Assembly: GCF_001194135.2 (NCBI RefSeq)
Contig: NC_068983.1
Location: 135,441,859-135,476,661, forward strand
DNA length: 34,803 bases
Source of the DNA: Octopus bimaculoides
Lineage: Eukaryota
Direction: 5' to 3'
Both the position numbers and the translations under genes were made by a program. The notes under the pieces are model-generated. The model was given only the letters and a program-made list of their open reading frames with translations. It did no database searches and was not told the DNA's origin. Within the stretch, counting starts at the first letter, position 1; each line of letters starts with the position of its first letter. Below, piece by piece: positions 3,734 through 24,452 of this stretch.

Positions 3734-4476
3734 AGATTTCTCTTTGTTGGTGGGGGCCATCTCCCAGAGAGCCTCAGATGATTTCTGACTGTCAACATTA
3801 CAATCTTCCACTAGCTGGTGGTAATACTGAGTAATTCCTAAATGGGTTTGTGGCACTGATGAAGTTCCAGTGATGTCCATAGAATGTGGATAAGACTTAC
3901 TGTTATTAAGTCTTTCATCAGTAACATAATGAATGACAACTTTTTGGTTATTATTAAAAGAACGATAAACATGTTTTAGCAGACAAGTTTCAATCTCATT
4001 AACTAACATTCGAAAAGTACTTTGACGCAGAGCAGGGCTCTGATTCAAGATTAAATCATTTGATCCTAAACTTAACCAAGAGTAGCCATCTTTAGTCCAG
4101 TCACTGGATTCCTGTGAAGGATCAATTTTCATGAGGTAAATTTCTCCCCGAATTGGCTCACAAGGAGGTTGACTTGAAAAAACTTCATCTGGAAGCATTA
4201 ATAAATCCATAACTTCTTTTGTTTCAAGAAATTTGTGAACTGCTTTTCGGTAAGATTCAGATCCAACATTTGTGAGAGGCTGACATCTTTGTTGCAATTC
4301 AGAATTGCAAACAGACAAAGCAAATAATGTATCATCAGAGCTGGAATCCAATTTTCTTTTGCGTTTTGTCTTACCGCGGACAGAACCAGCTTGGAAATCC
4401 TTTGCACGATCACGACCAAGTCGAAGAGTTGGAGCCCAATCGGGGTTTGCTGTTTCATATAGAGTGGCAGATTTTC
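3734..4476 (-). CDS. Coding exon 2 (743 nt, phase 1 to phase 0) of a THAP-domain gene: THAP C-terminus, basic NLS-like stretch, CG-1-like domain
   Basis: Acceptor attctattttatAG at 4478-4477 and donor TCT|GTAAGT at 3733. The frame is open throughout: (G)[20 protein letters not shown]...KTKRKRKLDSSSDD...FLETKEVMDLL...PPCEPIRGEIYL...WTKDGYSW...KHVYRSFNNNQKVVIHYV...NKEKS. It is in frame with track ORF 3725..4351. Confidence 0.85.
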
Positions 4477-4699
4477 CTATAAAATAGAATACAAGGAACT
4501 CTAATAAGTAAATAGGATTCTTTTACCACCAAAATTGGTGCAAAGAGGGATAATAATATAACTACAAAAAAAAGTTTGGTAAGGAAATGGTTAAGGTGTT
4601 TCAGATGAAAGATGCCATTTGTATGATTATTATATTTAAGTTTTGAGTAGGATTTGGCAGAATCTGCCATTGACAACAAATTTAAAATATCCTTTTTCA

Positions 4700-5150
4700 A
4701 TGTCAAGTTTCATCTACTGATCGGGTAACCATGTATCTCCTCTACAGCAAGACACCTGTTTCTGTCTCTCTGTCACTAACCTTTCATCATCAGGCATAAG
4801 ATCACCTCCAATGCTACATCTCTTCTCAAAGGATCTTTAGCTTGCAAGTTACTTGGTGGCCCTGTCAGTACTGGTGCCATGTAAAAAGCATCTAGTCCAC
4901 ACTATAAAGTGGTTGGCATTTGGAAGGGCATCTAGCTGTAAAAAAACCATGCCAAAACTGATCTTGCCTGTGCTGGTGCCATGTAAAAAGCATCCAGTCC
5001 ACTCTGCAGAGTGATTGGTGTTAAGGGCATCCAACCATAAAAACCATACAAAAGACAGCAAAGCATGGTGCAGTCTTCTGCCTAGCCAGCTCCTGTCAAA
5101 CTGTCCAACCCATGCCAGCATGGGAAGTGGATGTTAAATGATGATGATGC
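4700..5150 (+). repeat. (ATG)n-tailed repeat with extended 5' segment (RTE-LINE 3' UTR-like)
   Basis: Contains an internally duplicated ggtgccatgtaaaaagca...agggcatc block and ends ccagcatgggaagtggatgttaaatgatgatgatg. It is the reverse complement homolog of 13675-14150. Confidence 0.75.
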
Positions 5151-8150
5151 CATAAGGTGGATCCTTTACTGAACTGCCTTTTTGGTTTCCGTTGTATCAG
5201 TCATATAAGTAATATCTTATTTACTTACTTTTTTTAGAGGCAGTTATAAGGAAAGTGGTGAAACACCCAAGTCAGTCCTCTTCAAACATTTTATTATGTA
5301 TCTAATTAGAGTATATCATTCAACATCTTTACTTCACCTAGCAGTTGGAAATAGTCATCAGGACTTCTAAGACAGTTATTTACCATGGAATTCACTGGGA
5401 GATTTCTCTCATCTGCTTAATGCTGCTAAATTTAAAGTTAATTACTGACTCAATGTACTCCAAAGATTTAAGTATAGACTAATTATTTATGGAGAGACGG
5501 GAGATAAAACTACAAGTTAATGCTTTCTCTCTACTTTTTCCCTTTTTATTTCTTGTTCATCTTTTCAAAGTAAAACATGGATGCTAAAATTCTTATTCTT
5601 ATTTCATAATTGTTAACCTTGATTTCTGCTTTTCTACATATTTTCAATGACTAAAGAATTGTGCTGCAACAAATCTTTAATTCCCATACCTACTATTGGA
5701 ATTCCCTCTAATGTTTAACTTAGTAATTGTAATGATTATTTCCCTTGATTTATCTTGCAACTGTATGTTGGCAAAGGAGCCCAAAATCTGAAGTTACAGA
5801 TTCAAATACTACTAGACTTAACTTTCATTACATAGAATTCGTGAATAGCAGATCAAATGAAAAGGAGACACAGTGTTTCAGATATCTCAAATGAGAAGAG
5901 GTGTAATGTAACATTTTTGTGGCTCACAAATTTCACTTCAAATTGCGTCAAAGTAACCTCATTAATTTCTCAATAGATGAATATTAAAAAGCCATTTTCA
6001 TTATTATAACACAGAGATTTATATGATTGTTATATCATAATAGAATTTGAACCTATGCTCTCTAGGTTAACACACGATCATTTTAAACACTTAGCAAATA
6101 CATCTTTAATGTCTGGCAACTTTTCTTTGGTTCACATAATCAGAGAATATGTGGTGTTCAATTCCAAGCATGTGTGATTTTTCAGTAGCTCCTTGCTGTG
6201 CTGTTTATCTTTAATAGTGTTGAGTGAACTGGAATCAGTGGTCTTTAGAACTTACCATGACAGTTTACCACAATTTTCAGTAGAAGTGAAGTGAGGTGAA
6301 GGGATGATGCCAGCATGTGAAATATGGAAGATACTGGGCAGCAATATGAAGGGCAAATTACTAGGATTGGATGGACTGTCCCATGGATAAAAGCTTACAA
6401 GAGGAACACAGTGGATAATTTTAGACCAATCACTGGTTCACGTCAATGAAACAGAGATTGCCCATTGGAATTCTATATGAGCCACAAATATCCAGTGACA
6501 TTATTGATTACAGATGCATGCAATAAGAAATTATTGTTACTACTAAGAGGTAAACAAACAAGTGGATAAGGAAATTGATCCTAAGTTCCAAGTCATGATT
6601 TTATATTCTACTGTAGGCCAGATACTTAATTTTACGAGTCTAAGGTTTCATAGCAGTGTAAGAAATTACAACAATTATTACTACTACAACAGTGAAAATA
6701 ACATAATAAAGCAACAAAGCTGTACATAAACTTTGCCTTTCATAACAATAATATAAAAACTTGTAATATATTAATTTTCAATTTAGCCAACTATAATTCC
6801 TCTTTTATTAAATTATGCTCCTGCCTAAGCAAAAATGAATTTTTTAATATTGCTTCAGTTCAATGTACTGAACTCAGAGAAATAGTAAGGTGTTTATTTT
6901 ATTGTCTGCCCTCACTATCTTCCAAACTTGAAATTCCACCATAGTAAATATTACCTTTTCAGTCTCAATTACTGAAGTATCAGTAATATAATGTTTTCTG
7001 CTGAAATGACTATAATCTCTCCCTATAAATACTGGTAATGTACTAAGTCATATTTATTTGATCAATGAACTTTCCATATGTAACTCTCTATCTTCAGTTG
7101 TGTCTCTAATGTCAGTGGGAAAAAACATGAATGGAATATCACAAAATCTCAGTTCATTTTCTCCACAAATCTGAGGCTTTGTGCTATAGTGGAAATAATT
7201 GCTATTCCTGTGGCTGGTGCCATGCAAATTGCTTCTGCAACAATTTTTTCTTTTTTAATTTCACATCGAACTGTTTCATTTTACTGTTTACAACTTACTT
7301 CCTCTTTCACCTTAAAACTGACAGTTATCTGCATAATAGAGAACATTATCATCTTTACTACTGCTGTTGCAACTACTACTACTACAACTACTGGTGTTGG
7401 CTAATGTTACATTAATGATGGAAACTAGGACGTCTGACTGAAATGAGAAAACATAAAGTAGAACTAAAACTGGGAAGTAAACATTTAATTTGAATTACAC
7501 AAAATGATGGTGGGCATGACAAAAAATTTTACTTATAAAATGAGGAAGGAAAACAAATACAAAAAAAATTCCAAAGTAACTCAGAGCACCTCAGAATTAT
7601 TCTCAGTCCCAACCTAAAACAATGACAAAGCAACTTTTCACAATAATATAAGAGAGTGACTATAATCCAAATAAATTATTGTAAGACATGGTAGGAAATC
7701 AATTTTCCACTGTGTAATATTTAGAAAAACAAGATTTTATGGTGGGTACAAAAGGGAGTCTTTCTACACACTGTATAGTTCTTCCTCTTAGTTGTTGCTG
7801 TTATTCACCATCATCATCATCATCATCATTTAACGTCCACTTTTCCATGCATGCATCAAGCAGAATTTGTTGAGGTAGATTTTCTACAGCCAGATGCCCT
7901 TCATGTTTCCAAGTAATATATATATCATCAGTAAATCATAAATATGAAAAAAAAGCACACTCTAAGTTATAGAGCAGTAGAGTATATAAATAAAGATATA
8001 GAATCCTGGCTGCCGAACATAGGGGAAAAATTATGTAGGGTCAACAATGTTAAATGATGATGAGATATGGCTGGTTTATGGGGTTACCCAGGGTTTCACG
8101 TCCATAAAGTAACCCCATAAACTGGCCGTGTCTGTCTGTCTATCTATATA

Positions 8151-22930: not shown

Positions 22931-23164
22931 AATCAGTGCTGACATAAGATTAAACTAGTATAGATCTTAAAGAATTATGAATGTTTGTTTGTAAACAAAT
23001 AAACGCTTATCGCATTATACAACAAAGCTAGTGTCGTTATTTATTCACGTACGTTGCATTCTGTGTTTATATTTTATGAATTAATCACGACCTGTTTTTT
23101 TGTGTACATTTTTTTTACTTCTTTTGTGTAGTGCTATCTGTTATTAAAACATTCTTTATCGTCT

Positions 23165-23201
<37 letters not shown>

Positions 23202-24232
23202 CTTTATATTATAACACCAACTGACTTCAAACGAATTACATGATATCGCATGACAAGAATATCGAGACAAGTGGCAGCGTGTTCTGCTGCTCCCACTATG
23301 TTTACCATTGCATCTCAGAGAGGCAAATAATGGAATACGTGAAGTGACCGACCATTTCTAATCACCTTGGCACTCAGTTGGTAGCAGTTAGTTCTACAGA
23401 ATATTTACACCAATTATCAGAGTTAGAAGAACAATCGAAGAAATAAAAGACTATTATGTAATATATAAACAACGTGCTAATGTTAACATATTCTGTGTTA
23501 TAAACTGACATTTACCTAAATCGTGGAATTATTTAAATCTAATCAGCGAAAAGATAATGATCATACTGAATATTTAACGAAAATATACGCAATTCACACC
23601 GAATGAAATTACTAAGGTAACAAGCATGTTCACAACAACAGTATTTTATCAATGGAATCGCAAGTTTTATAGCTCTGCTAGCTAAAACATGTTCATTGAA
23701 TAGTTAATATTTGTTCAGTTCTATGTATTTTGATATAACAACTATAATAGTAATAACAACTGTTGTTGTTACTACCAACTCGACAAAATAAATATTCTGA
23801 GGCAGCATCGAACAAATTCTGTTTTGAGGTTAAGAATACATTCCATGAAAAAGCTCGACATACACATGCTCACGATGTTGTCAGCGAGGCATTGTCAGAG
23901 CTAATAGTATACGGTGGAGGAATGGAGGCATAACTGAAAGAGCCGGTTCTTTTCGTGAGTTGACAACTTTTATTTACTAATCATTTACAACCGAATTTTA
24001 TAAACAATTATAATCCTTATTCCTAGTAGAACGTCACGGTGGATATAAACTGTTTCAAGCTAGAATCTATACAAAACTACCACAATAATATGGGAATCCA
24101 ACATGTCTGACTCTCGTTGATTTCTCCCTCCACGACTACTGATAAAAACAAAGAATTCGTTTTGGAAGATAACGACTGAAACAATAACAACAACAGAGTA
24201 TTGAGTATTGCATAATTATGATTCCATCTTAC

Positions 24233-24452
24233 CGGATATGAAATGATCTGAGCACACCCGGACATATGCATAACTGGTCTCTTTTAAATCTGGTCGATTA
24301 ATATTAGCTATCCATTGTTCGCGACGTTTTCGCGATCTTTCTCTAGTTTCTTCTCCTTGGTTAGTGATGATGGCTGGCAAACGGTAAAATGAGTTAGCTC
24401 TATCGCGATCTGCACGACTTGAACAGCCGTTAACAGCACAAAAGTTAACCAT
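24233..24452 (-). CDS. Coding exon 1 of a THAP zinc-finger gene (N-terminal C2CH THAP domain)
   Basis: MVNFCAVNGC...FYRLP...RREQWIANINR...[11 protein letters not shown] carries the THAP signature C-x4-C...W...C-x2-H-F. The phase-1 donor G|GTAAGA is at 24232. Confidence 0.9.

Follow-up and report, generated by a model that had tools for sequence, protein, structure and literature searches.

DNA binding by the THAP domain of THAP1 needs its CCCH ligands and four invariant residues (P, W, F and P); the AVPTIF motif is packed onto both helix and zinc site, and P78 together with AVPTIF is needed for DNA binding and fold stability (PMC3479173). ISL2EU elements are defined by a transposase that combines THAP, helix-turn-helix (HTH) and DDE domains, with a YqaJ partner (PMC4482050, PMC4122938, PMC9179366). 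In host-transposase fusions, a transposase DNA-binding domain is spliced to a host domain (Cosby et al. 2021 Science, as cited in PMC9179366), and Octopus genes that associate THAP or CENPB with BTB have already been listed (PMC10027918). Here we describe a THAP gene in a stretch of 34,803 nucleotides of the Octopus bimaculoides genome (assembly GCF_001194135.2, contig NC_068983.1, positions 135,441,859 to 135,476,661 of the forward strand; hereafter the window, with positions counted from its first letter). Two minus-strand exons separated by a long intron together encode one THAP domain. We propose, with a probability of about 0.88 for the explanation as a whole, that they belong to the ortholog of LOC115209549 isoform X1, a nuclear THAP / CG-1-like / BTB protein whose THAP module would have been captured from a transposon. 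A sequence-only reading of the window had interpreted the locus as a hidden, domesticated THAP gene split by a transposon-filled intron, and that interpretation is essentially right.

The two-exon join and the THAP domain

Coding exon 1 (24233..24452, minus strand, 220 nt) starts with an ATG at 24452, comprises 73 codons plus one nucleotide and carries the zinc-ligand part of the THAP domain; it closes with CAT TTC ATA TCC G, followed by the donor at 24232 (G/GTAAGA). Coding exon 2 (3734..4476, minus strand, 743 nt), which encodes residues 74-321, is preceded by a pyrimidine-rich tract ending in the acceptor TTTTATAG, opens at 4476 with GA AAA TCT GCC ACT CTA TAT, and closes with GAG AAA TCT at 3734, immediately before a GTAAGT donor at 3733. 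When joined, the two exons (963 nt) form 321 codons with no stop, the junction lying in phase 1 within a Gly codon (G/GA). Intron 1 (4477..24232, minus strand) is a GT..AG intron of 19,756 nt as assembled, including 401 N, and the initial part of intron 2 occupies positions 1..3733 of the same strand; the exons for the linker, the BTB domain and the C-terminus lie past the left window edge. The two-exon join is confirmed: the exact phase-1 junction between 24233 and 4476 that had been claimed from the letters recurs in an octopus RefSeq protein and in a cuttlefish contig (see below). The in-frame intronic stop was also found as predicted, since reading exon 1 through its donor adds GKMES before a stop, giving a product of 78 residues.

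The join was compared with the alternatives available in the window. When 34 homologues were aligned to it by tblastn, residues ~1-75 of all 34 fell on 24452-24228 and the next residues on 4486/4477 onward, and no rival exon piece was found below E~0.4 in the 34.8 kb. THAP-like matches at 8127-8192 and 22620-22685 had E > 0.6 and were taken as noise. A family-specific profile was made from 35 homologues, the window being excluded, and the acceptor candidates were the downstream AGs in the right phase, with 27 codons kept open. With this profile, exon 1 alone scored 116.7 bits vs 152.7 bits when joined at 4476 (+36 bits). The acceptor at 4476 ranked at the top of 336 candidates; the remaining 335 gave 115.6 +/- 2.2 bits, and those exceeding 130 bits were only in-frame variants of the same exon. 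The join is not a product of chance.

The THAP domain itself matches PF05485 with 49 bits (gathering cut-off 23.9), with full coverage in the joined peptide only. Its zinc signature is C5-X4-C10-X56-C67-X2-H70, in which the long spacer is above that of the classical C-X2-4-C-X35-50-C-X2-H pattern, as in all ISL2EU-type homologues. C10, C67, H70, D86 and W87 show no variation in an alignment of 36 sequences, and P85, P89 and G94 almost none. P26, W47 and F71 are carried by exon 1; the C-terminal third of the domain (4412..4476, minus strand, residues 74-95), with P89 and the WAPTLRL box equivalent to AVPTIF, is carried by exon 2. Since exon 2 supplies P89 and the box, the 78-residue read-through product is incomplete, and the claim that neither exon alone makes a whole domain holds: both features are present only after the join. 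AlphaFold2, run with the 36 sequences, modelled residues 1-95 as one domain, with a block-mean predicted local distance difference test (pLDDT) of 92-96 for residues 21-90, junction included. Among PDB entries the predicted fold was closest to the THAP2 THAP domain (prob 0.97, E 0.02), and sequence similarity to THAP1 was weak (E 0.002). Like human THAP1 and THAP2 (PDB 2ko0, 2jtg, 2d8r), the octopus module has C2CH ligands, the invariant P/W/F/P and, at its C-terminal end, an A-P-T box, and its predicted fold is beta-alpha-beta; however, the C2-to-C3 spacer counts 56 residues vs 43 in THAP1, and the remainder of the protein is unlike. On this model the domain is predicted to bind DNA in a zinc-dependent and sequence-specific manner.

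Orthologues, selection and domains beyond THAP

The RefSeq protein XP_029633843.1 (LOC115209549 isoform X1, Octopus sinensis/vulgaris; P0075, 875 residues) contains Pfam THAP and BTB domains, and its N-terminus shows two differences from the 321 joined residues of the window: exon 1 is identical to its residues 1-75 (75/75) and exon 2 is 98.4% identical. An O. vulgaris chromosome segment of 58.9 kb, free of N (GCA_951406725.2; L009), aligns collinearly with window positions ~34459 to ~381 in a single orientation at 88-96% identity, and its exons translate exactly to XP_029633843.1. LOC115209549 isoform X1 and the window gene have the same exon boundaries, the same GT..AG sites, a long first intron and a GSKIP neighbour; they come from different species and assemblies, with ~92% nucleotide identity, and LOC115209549 has no described function. 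No mention of LOC115209549 or of the present locus was found in the literature. The exons 24452-24233 and 4476-3734 are very probably the first two coding exons of the LOC115209549 isoform X1 ortholog.

A counterpart with all junctions closed was found in contig L007 (3,486 nt, run SRR8281692), which contains an unbroken open reading frame (ORF) of 901 codons (P0035) with THAP, CG-1 and BTB. P0035 was assigned to a cuttlefish on the basis of 92% identity with a protein of Acanthosepion pharaonis. At the nucleotide level, L007 323-546 corresponds to window 24452-24229 and L007 542-610 to window 4477-4409. Five introns interrupt the octopus gene over 39 kb and none the L007 ORF, so that L007 is best read as a spliced mRNA. 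Both ends of exon 2 are splice junctions in the cuttlefish transcripts P0035 and P0059. P0035 was found by exhaustive HMMER search and P0075 by a search seeded with P0035; a word-indexed search missed both.

To measure selection, exon 1 was compared with Logan contig L008 and exon 2 with L001, and in a second comparison both with O. vulgaris. The counts were 28 synonymous and 4 nonsynonymous changes for the contigs (dN/dS, or omega, 0.036; Fisher p = 1e-15), and 15 and 2 for O. vulgaris (omega 0.035); exon 1 (relative to L008) and THAP codons 1-95 had 7 synonymous and no nonsynonymous changes. These data show strong purifying selection on the joined product. One syntenic locus beside GSKIP was present in three octopus sources: the window, L008 and L009. 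The checks of synteny and dN/dS that the sequence-only reading had proposed thus came out in its favour, with 58 kb of O. vulgaris collinear, a dN/dS of 0.035 and an orthologous transcript in cuttlefish, and the domesticated status that it proposed agrees with dN/dS values of 0.035-0.036, with synteny and with the lack of transposase domains.

That reading had the gene model right but overlooked two parts of the protein: exon 2 also encodes a CG-1-like domain, and downstream exons a BTB domain. The CG-1-like domain (3926..4243, minus strand, residues ~152-257) is a putative second DNA-binding domain with a WRKY/NAC-like beta-sheet fold. Nearly the whole CAMTA CG-1 profile (PF03859) is aligned by these residues, and paralogues lie above the curated threshold: the relatives P0037 (44% identical) and P0038 (40%) pass the cut-off at 33 bits. 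Capitella P0036 reaches 137 bits over five repeats. In the AlphaFold2 model the core forms a beta-sheet (pLDDT mostly 78-94), for which Foldseek ranks NAC and WRKY DNA-binding domains highest (prob 0.93-1.0, with E only 4e-3). A PDB sequence search with P0036 gave marginal WRKY matches only (E ~0.1). Unlike CAMTA, the relatives of the octopus CG-1 subtype sit on Mutator-like (MULE) transposases or in tandem arrays, and no CAMTA-type TIG, ankyrin or IQ domains were found in Pfam scans of the 321 residues, P0035 and P0038. CG-1-like domains were observed N-terminally on MULE transposases (P0041, P0045) and in five to six tandem copies in Capitella P0036, which suggests that transposons carry this CG-1 subtype as a DNA-binding domain of their own.

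Both ortholog models, P0075 and P0035, contain the BTB domain. The exons expected after the donor at 3733 were located in L009 at 43572-48914: exons 3-6, encoding the linker, the BTB domain and the C-terminus, begin ~9.6 kb after exon 2 and lie ~3 kb past the left edge of the window, window position ~381 corresponding to L009 39889.

Proposed transposon origin and competing explanations

The closest relatives of the THAP domain, 48-63% identical over its length, are proteins that combine PF05485 with PF13613 (HTH_Tnp_4) and PF13359 (DDE_Tnp_4), and at three loci they adjoin a YqaJ/PHD gene; the sequence-only reading had named a PIF/Harbinger/ISL2EU-type THAP, and correctly so. ISL2EU transposases and the octopus gene have a THAP subtype in common (FYRLPAIIT.QG..T.ELS..RR..W...I.R.D....Y pattern, ending LGH). 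In contrast to ISL2EU, the octopus gene is without HTH_Tnp_4, DDE_Tnp_4 and a YqaJ ORF, is single-copy, syntenic and under purifying selection, and is fused to CG-1-like and BTB domains. The terminal inverted repeats and AT target-site duplication of ISL2EU elements would not be expected in a domesticated gene. In the window, tblastn with full-length transposases detected no HTH or DDE homology, and the best match of a YqaJ ORF (from L002) had E 1.4. The THAP subtype is found in many phyla, mostly on full ISL2EU-type transposases, with intronless copies in further phyla, and the THAP+CG-1+BTB architecture was found in cephalopods only, among 1.84 billion representatives covered by the exhaustive HMMER search. 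Because the subtype is widespread on transposases and this architecture was seen only in cephalopods, we infer capture from a transposon.

The intron that splits the domain is also found in related genes. The transposase gene of the starfish Patiria miniata (P0022, THAP+HTH_Tnp_4+DDE_Tnp_4, on L004) and the THAP-only genes of the brachiopod Lingula (P0023, L005) and the clam Ruditapes (P0033, L006) are interrupted in the Gly codon by the same intron, also in phase 1. Its borders read AGC G/GTGAGT ... CTGTAG/GA AAG CCC in Patiria, AAT G/GTAAGA ... TTCTAG/GT AAG CCT in Lingula and AGC G/GTACGT ... TTGCAG/GA AAA CCA in Ruditapes, to be compared with TCC G/GTAAGA ... TTATAG/GA AAA TCT in the window. 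P0002 is intron-less. In P0031 (212 residues, close to the coral sequences P0026 and P0071), CSDHFISGK is followed by ~40 extra residues and then SGKPSSIYDKDSPDWAPS, as if the intron at this same Gly codon had been retained in frame. Since position and phase match those of related THAP genes in three other phyla, the intron does not post-date domestication; it appears to have been inherited, its length alone having grown. The statement that the gene now has a long intron therefore stands for the length and fails for the intron itself, which, being still recognisable by position and phase, would date to the transposon stage.

The following mechanism is proposed. The THAP module and its internal intron would have been captured from the transposase gene of an ISL2EU (PIF/Harbinger-like) element by a fusion within transposase exon 2, after the basic stretch, to a CG-1-like/BTB host frame, with loss of the HTH and DDE parts; insertions of mariner, SINE-like and LINE-like (short and long interspersed nuclear element) type would then have lengthened intron 1. 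The product would act as a sequence-specific transcription regulator, in which THAP and CG-1-like domains are predicted to bind DNA, K109-K115 is a putative nuclear localisation signal and the C-terminal BTB domain may serve oligomerisation or cofactor recruitment. The gene and GSKIP would be transcribed in opposite directions from one short, conserved promoter. As in host-transposase fusions, a DNA-binding domain is joined to an interaction domain (BTB), catalysis is lost and the arrangement is conserved among relatives; the octopus gene differs from these fusions in its ISL2EU source, in the fusion point inside transposase exon 2 and in the CG-1-like domain between THAP and BTB. No domestication from the ISL2EU superfamily was described in the literature searched.

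Several points weigh against this explanation. The sequence-only reading had listed a failure of the THAP profile score to improve on joining among the outcomes that would speak against the join, and the generic PF05485 profile indeed showed no gain: 49.0 bits for exon 1 alone vs 48.9 joined. What rose was the profile coverage, from 1-58 to 1-86 of 87. The flat score reflects the weak C-terminal part of the PF05485 model and not a false join, and it is a poor ground for refutation because the family-specific profile gains 36 bits. XP_029633843.1 is an automated prediction, and the mRNA status of L007 is read from its intron-less ORF of 901 codons. The RNA support for the join comes from cuttlefish and not from the species of the window, for which a junction-centred protein search found no spliced product, only the 78-residue read-through ORF (P0069). 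The CG-1 match of the window gene scores 19 bits, below the cut-off of 23.5, and tblastn of P0035, P0075 and P0076 found no BTB exons in the window. O. sinensis isoform X2 (P0076) skips exons 1 and 2 and starts from a CENPB-like/HTH_Tnp_Tc5 first exon, and in cuttlefish P0059 and P0062 FAR1-like 5' exons are joined to the exon-2 acceptor. Capture of the THAP module from an ISL2EU transposase is argued from distribution rather than from a rooted phylogeny; binding to DNA, localisation to the nucleus and a promoter shared with GSKIP are predictions.

The alternative isoforms bear on the view that exon 1 is a stand-alone 78-residue stub, or non-functional, and that exon 2 is used from another upstream exon, for which the record of the 78-residue ORF as a called product (P0069) can also be cited. 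The use of exon 2 with a different 5' exon, raised in the sequence-only reading as a possible refutation, does occur in the FAR1-like cuttlefish isoforms, beside the THAP join. These isoforms do not contradict that join; they show other uses of the downstream exons. Moreover, tblastn found no FAR1-like or CENPB-like exon in the window, the 78-residue product is without the invariant Pro and the AVPTIF box needed for THAP function (PMC3479173), and exon 1 combines a conserved donor with purely synonymous divergence. With the THAP join present in RefSeq and in cuttlefish RNA, and with isoforms that can coexist with the THAP isoform, we consider the stub very unlikely. The assembly could be questioned instead, a gap of estimated size (9047..9447, 401 N, noncoding) lying between the exons and abutting a repeat copy: if it joined unlinked contigs, the exons would not form one locus. 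As the gap is inside intron 1, the reading frame is unaffected and linkage is the real issue. The window is however collinear, in the same order and orientation, with gap-free O. vulgaris, where the exons are 23.0 kb apart. The gap flanks are 300 nt apart on L009 (window 9046 at 25397, window 9852 at 25096), and this 300-nt stretch, opposite the gap and a SINE-like copy, is unalignable. Because the L009 exons are separated by 23,022 nt without a gap, with splice sites GTAAGA and TTTTACAG/GA, the long intron is real and not a scaffolding product, and an artefact of this kind deserves hardly any credence; the length of intron 1 in O. bimaculoides is uncertain by the gap size.

The other two alternatives concern the transposon. 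The pieces might be a decaying ISL2EU copy whose own intron was bloated by insertions, and not a host gene: the THAP domain is close to that of ISL2EU-type transposases, the intron is the same as in THAP genes of other phyla, and the region is rich in mobile-element debris. This view is already contradicted and very improbable, as the window is without HTH_Tnp_4, DDE_Tnp_4 and YqaJ homology, dN/dS is 0.035 in two species comparisons, a single syntenic locus lies by GSKIP in three octopus sources, and the ORF runs on into CG-1-like and BTB domains that are also conserved in cuttlefish. Conversely, THAP could be an old host domain that was captured by ISL2EU, the octopus gene then not being transposon-derived. 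THAP domains are also common in host genes (PMC10027918). Nevertheless, the combination of THAP subtype and intron occurs in echinoderm, brachiopod and bivalve genes, P0031, close to coral proteins in sequence, seems to retain the intron at the same site, intronless copies exist in further phyla, and THAP+CG-1+BTB was found in cephalopods only, among the 1.84 billion representatives; a capture in this direction appears unlikely. The THAP / CG-1-like / BTB ortholog, with a THAP module probably taken from ISL2EU, is the explanation that we retain.

The 5' modules seen upstream of the BTB exons are ISL2EU THAP plus a CG-1-like domain of the type also carried by MULE transposases (X1), pogo/CENPB-like (O. 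sinensis X2, whose first exon lies at L009 42494-43051, ~0.5 kb upstream of exon 3) and FAR1-like (cuttlefish P0059 and P0062). It is conceivable, as a tentative reading, that the gene is a module-swapping regulator, conserved among coleoid cephalopods, in which alternative promoters and splicing combine one set of BTB 3' exons with alternative 5' DNA-binding modules, each from a different transposon superfamily. The Drosophila lola / mod(mdg4) arrangement would then be its counterpart of opposite polarity. The neighbouring paralog LOC115209547, with CG-1 and BTB, has a predicted isoform X1 (P0078) with a mid-protein DDE_3 (Tc1/mariner) segment, which may be either a transposon turned into an exon or an error of annotation.

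The locus is a correct re-annotation, not a discovery, the model being public for the sister octopus. The description of the gene as hidden applies at most to the O. bimaculoides assembly track, since the same model is in the O. sinensis/vulgaris RefSeq; if two stubs appear in that track, a single LOC115209549 ortholog should replace them, with the remaining exons beyond the window. We place the gene, itself uncharacterised, among the host-transposase fusion regulators, in the class of Octopus THAP genes associated with BTB that was noted in PMC10027918. The present analysis adds the probable ISL2EU source of the THAP module, the inheritance of its intron, a CG-1-like domain and the evidence from selection and synteny. 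The gene would provide a clean example of transposase capture from ISL2EU, and it adds the THAP / CG-1-like / BTB architecture to the cephalopod transposon-derived regulators. No general principle is changed, domain-splitting introns and Octopus THAP-BTB genes being already documented (PMC10027918).

The GSKIP neighbour and the repeats of the window

A neighbour lies head-to-head with exon 1, as the proposal of a shared host promoter implied. It is a GSKIP-domain gene with a complete ORF of 131 residues (24803..25198, plus strand; Pfam GSKIP_dom 116 bits), 350 bp away on the opposite strand, and its O. vulgaris counterpart is 99% identical. L008 and L009 show the same arrangement, with 351 nt from ATG to ATG in L009. 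The divergent intergenic region (24453..24802, 350 bp between the ATGs) is a candidate bidirectional promoter, 96.6% identical to L008 vs 88.5% for the intron interior. It contains a palindromic cAMP response element (CRE)-like TGACGTCA at 24532-24539, ~80-90 nt upstream of the THAP ATG, which is conserved in the sister-species contig L008 and has a copy at ~235-245 of the cuttlefish contig L007, at a similar distance from the ATG. From this geometry and conservation, a bidirectional promoter shared with GSKIP is plausible.

The content of intron 1 agrees in part with its description as transposon-filled. A mariner-type transposase fragment, now a pseudogene, occupies 8375..8740 on the minus strand (Pfam Transposase_1 67 bits, DDE_3 26 bits); as this stretch is collinear with O. 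vulgaris, the insertion is older than the species split. The intron also contains at least six copies of a ~200-bp repeat and other dispersed repeats. We call the repeat SINE-like from its repetition within the window. The description needs tempering in that the copies are fragments and the LINE-like ones have no Pfam match: in a Pfam scan of the longest stop-free segments of the intron, none was obtained for the fragments at 11918-12385 and 19270-19632, which look like LINE-derived ORF fragments, or for the SINE-like ORFs. Within the intron, a direct repeat of 254 bp with 93% identity (14329-14582 vs 8148-8399) lies beside the mariner fragment and may be part of the same element family.

Across the window, the SINE-like family measures ~200-250 bp with 71-90% identity between copies, located at 1550-2080, 4865-5149, 9464-9853, 13656-13960, 18536-18745, 20693-20898, 28209-28383, 31272-31440 and 33614-33803, with an inverted pair at 1817-2080. 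The window has two runs of N (9047-9447 and 28384-29108), and the SINE-like copies that abut both probably explain these assembly gaps. Microsatellites of (TA)n type were seen at 10924-10965, 23167-23198, 27858-27935 and 29109-29139, one of them directly flanking the gap at 28384-29108. In intron 2, an ORF at 21-407 (plus strand) without a Pfam match is presumably a LINE fragment, and a Tc1/mariner-like HTH fragment with weak HTH matches lies at 2885-3187 (plus strand).

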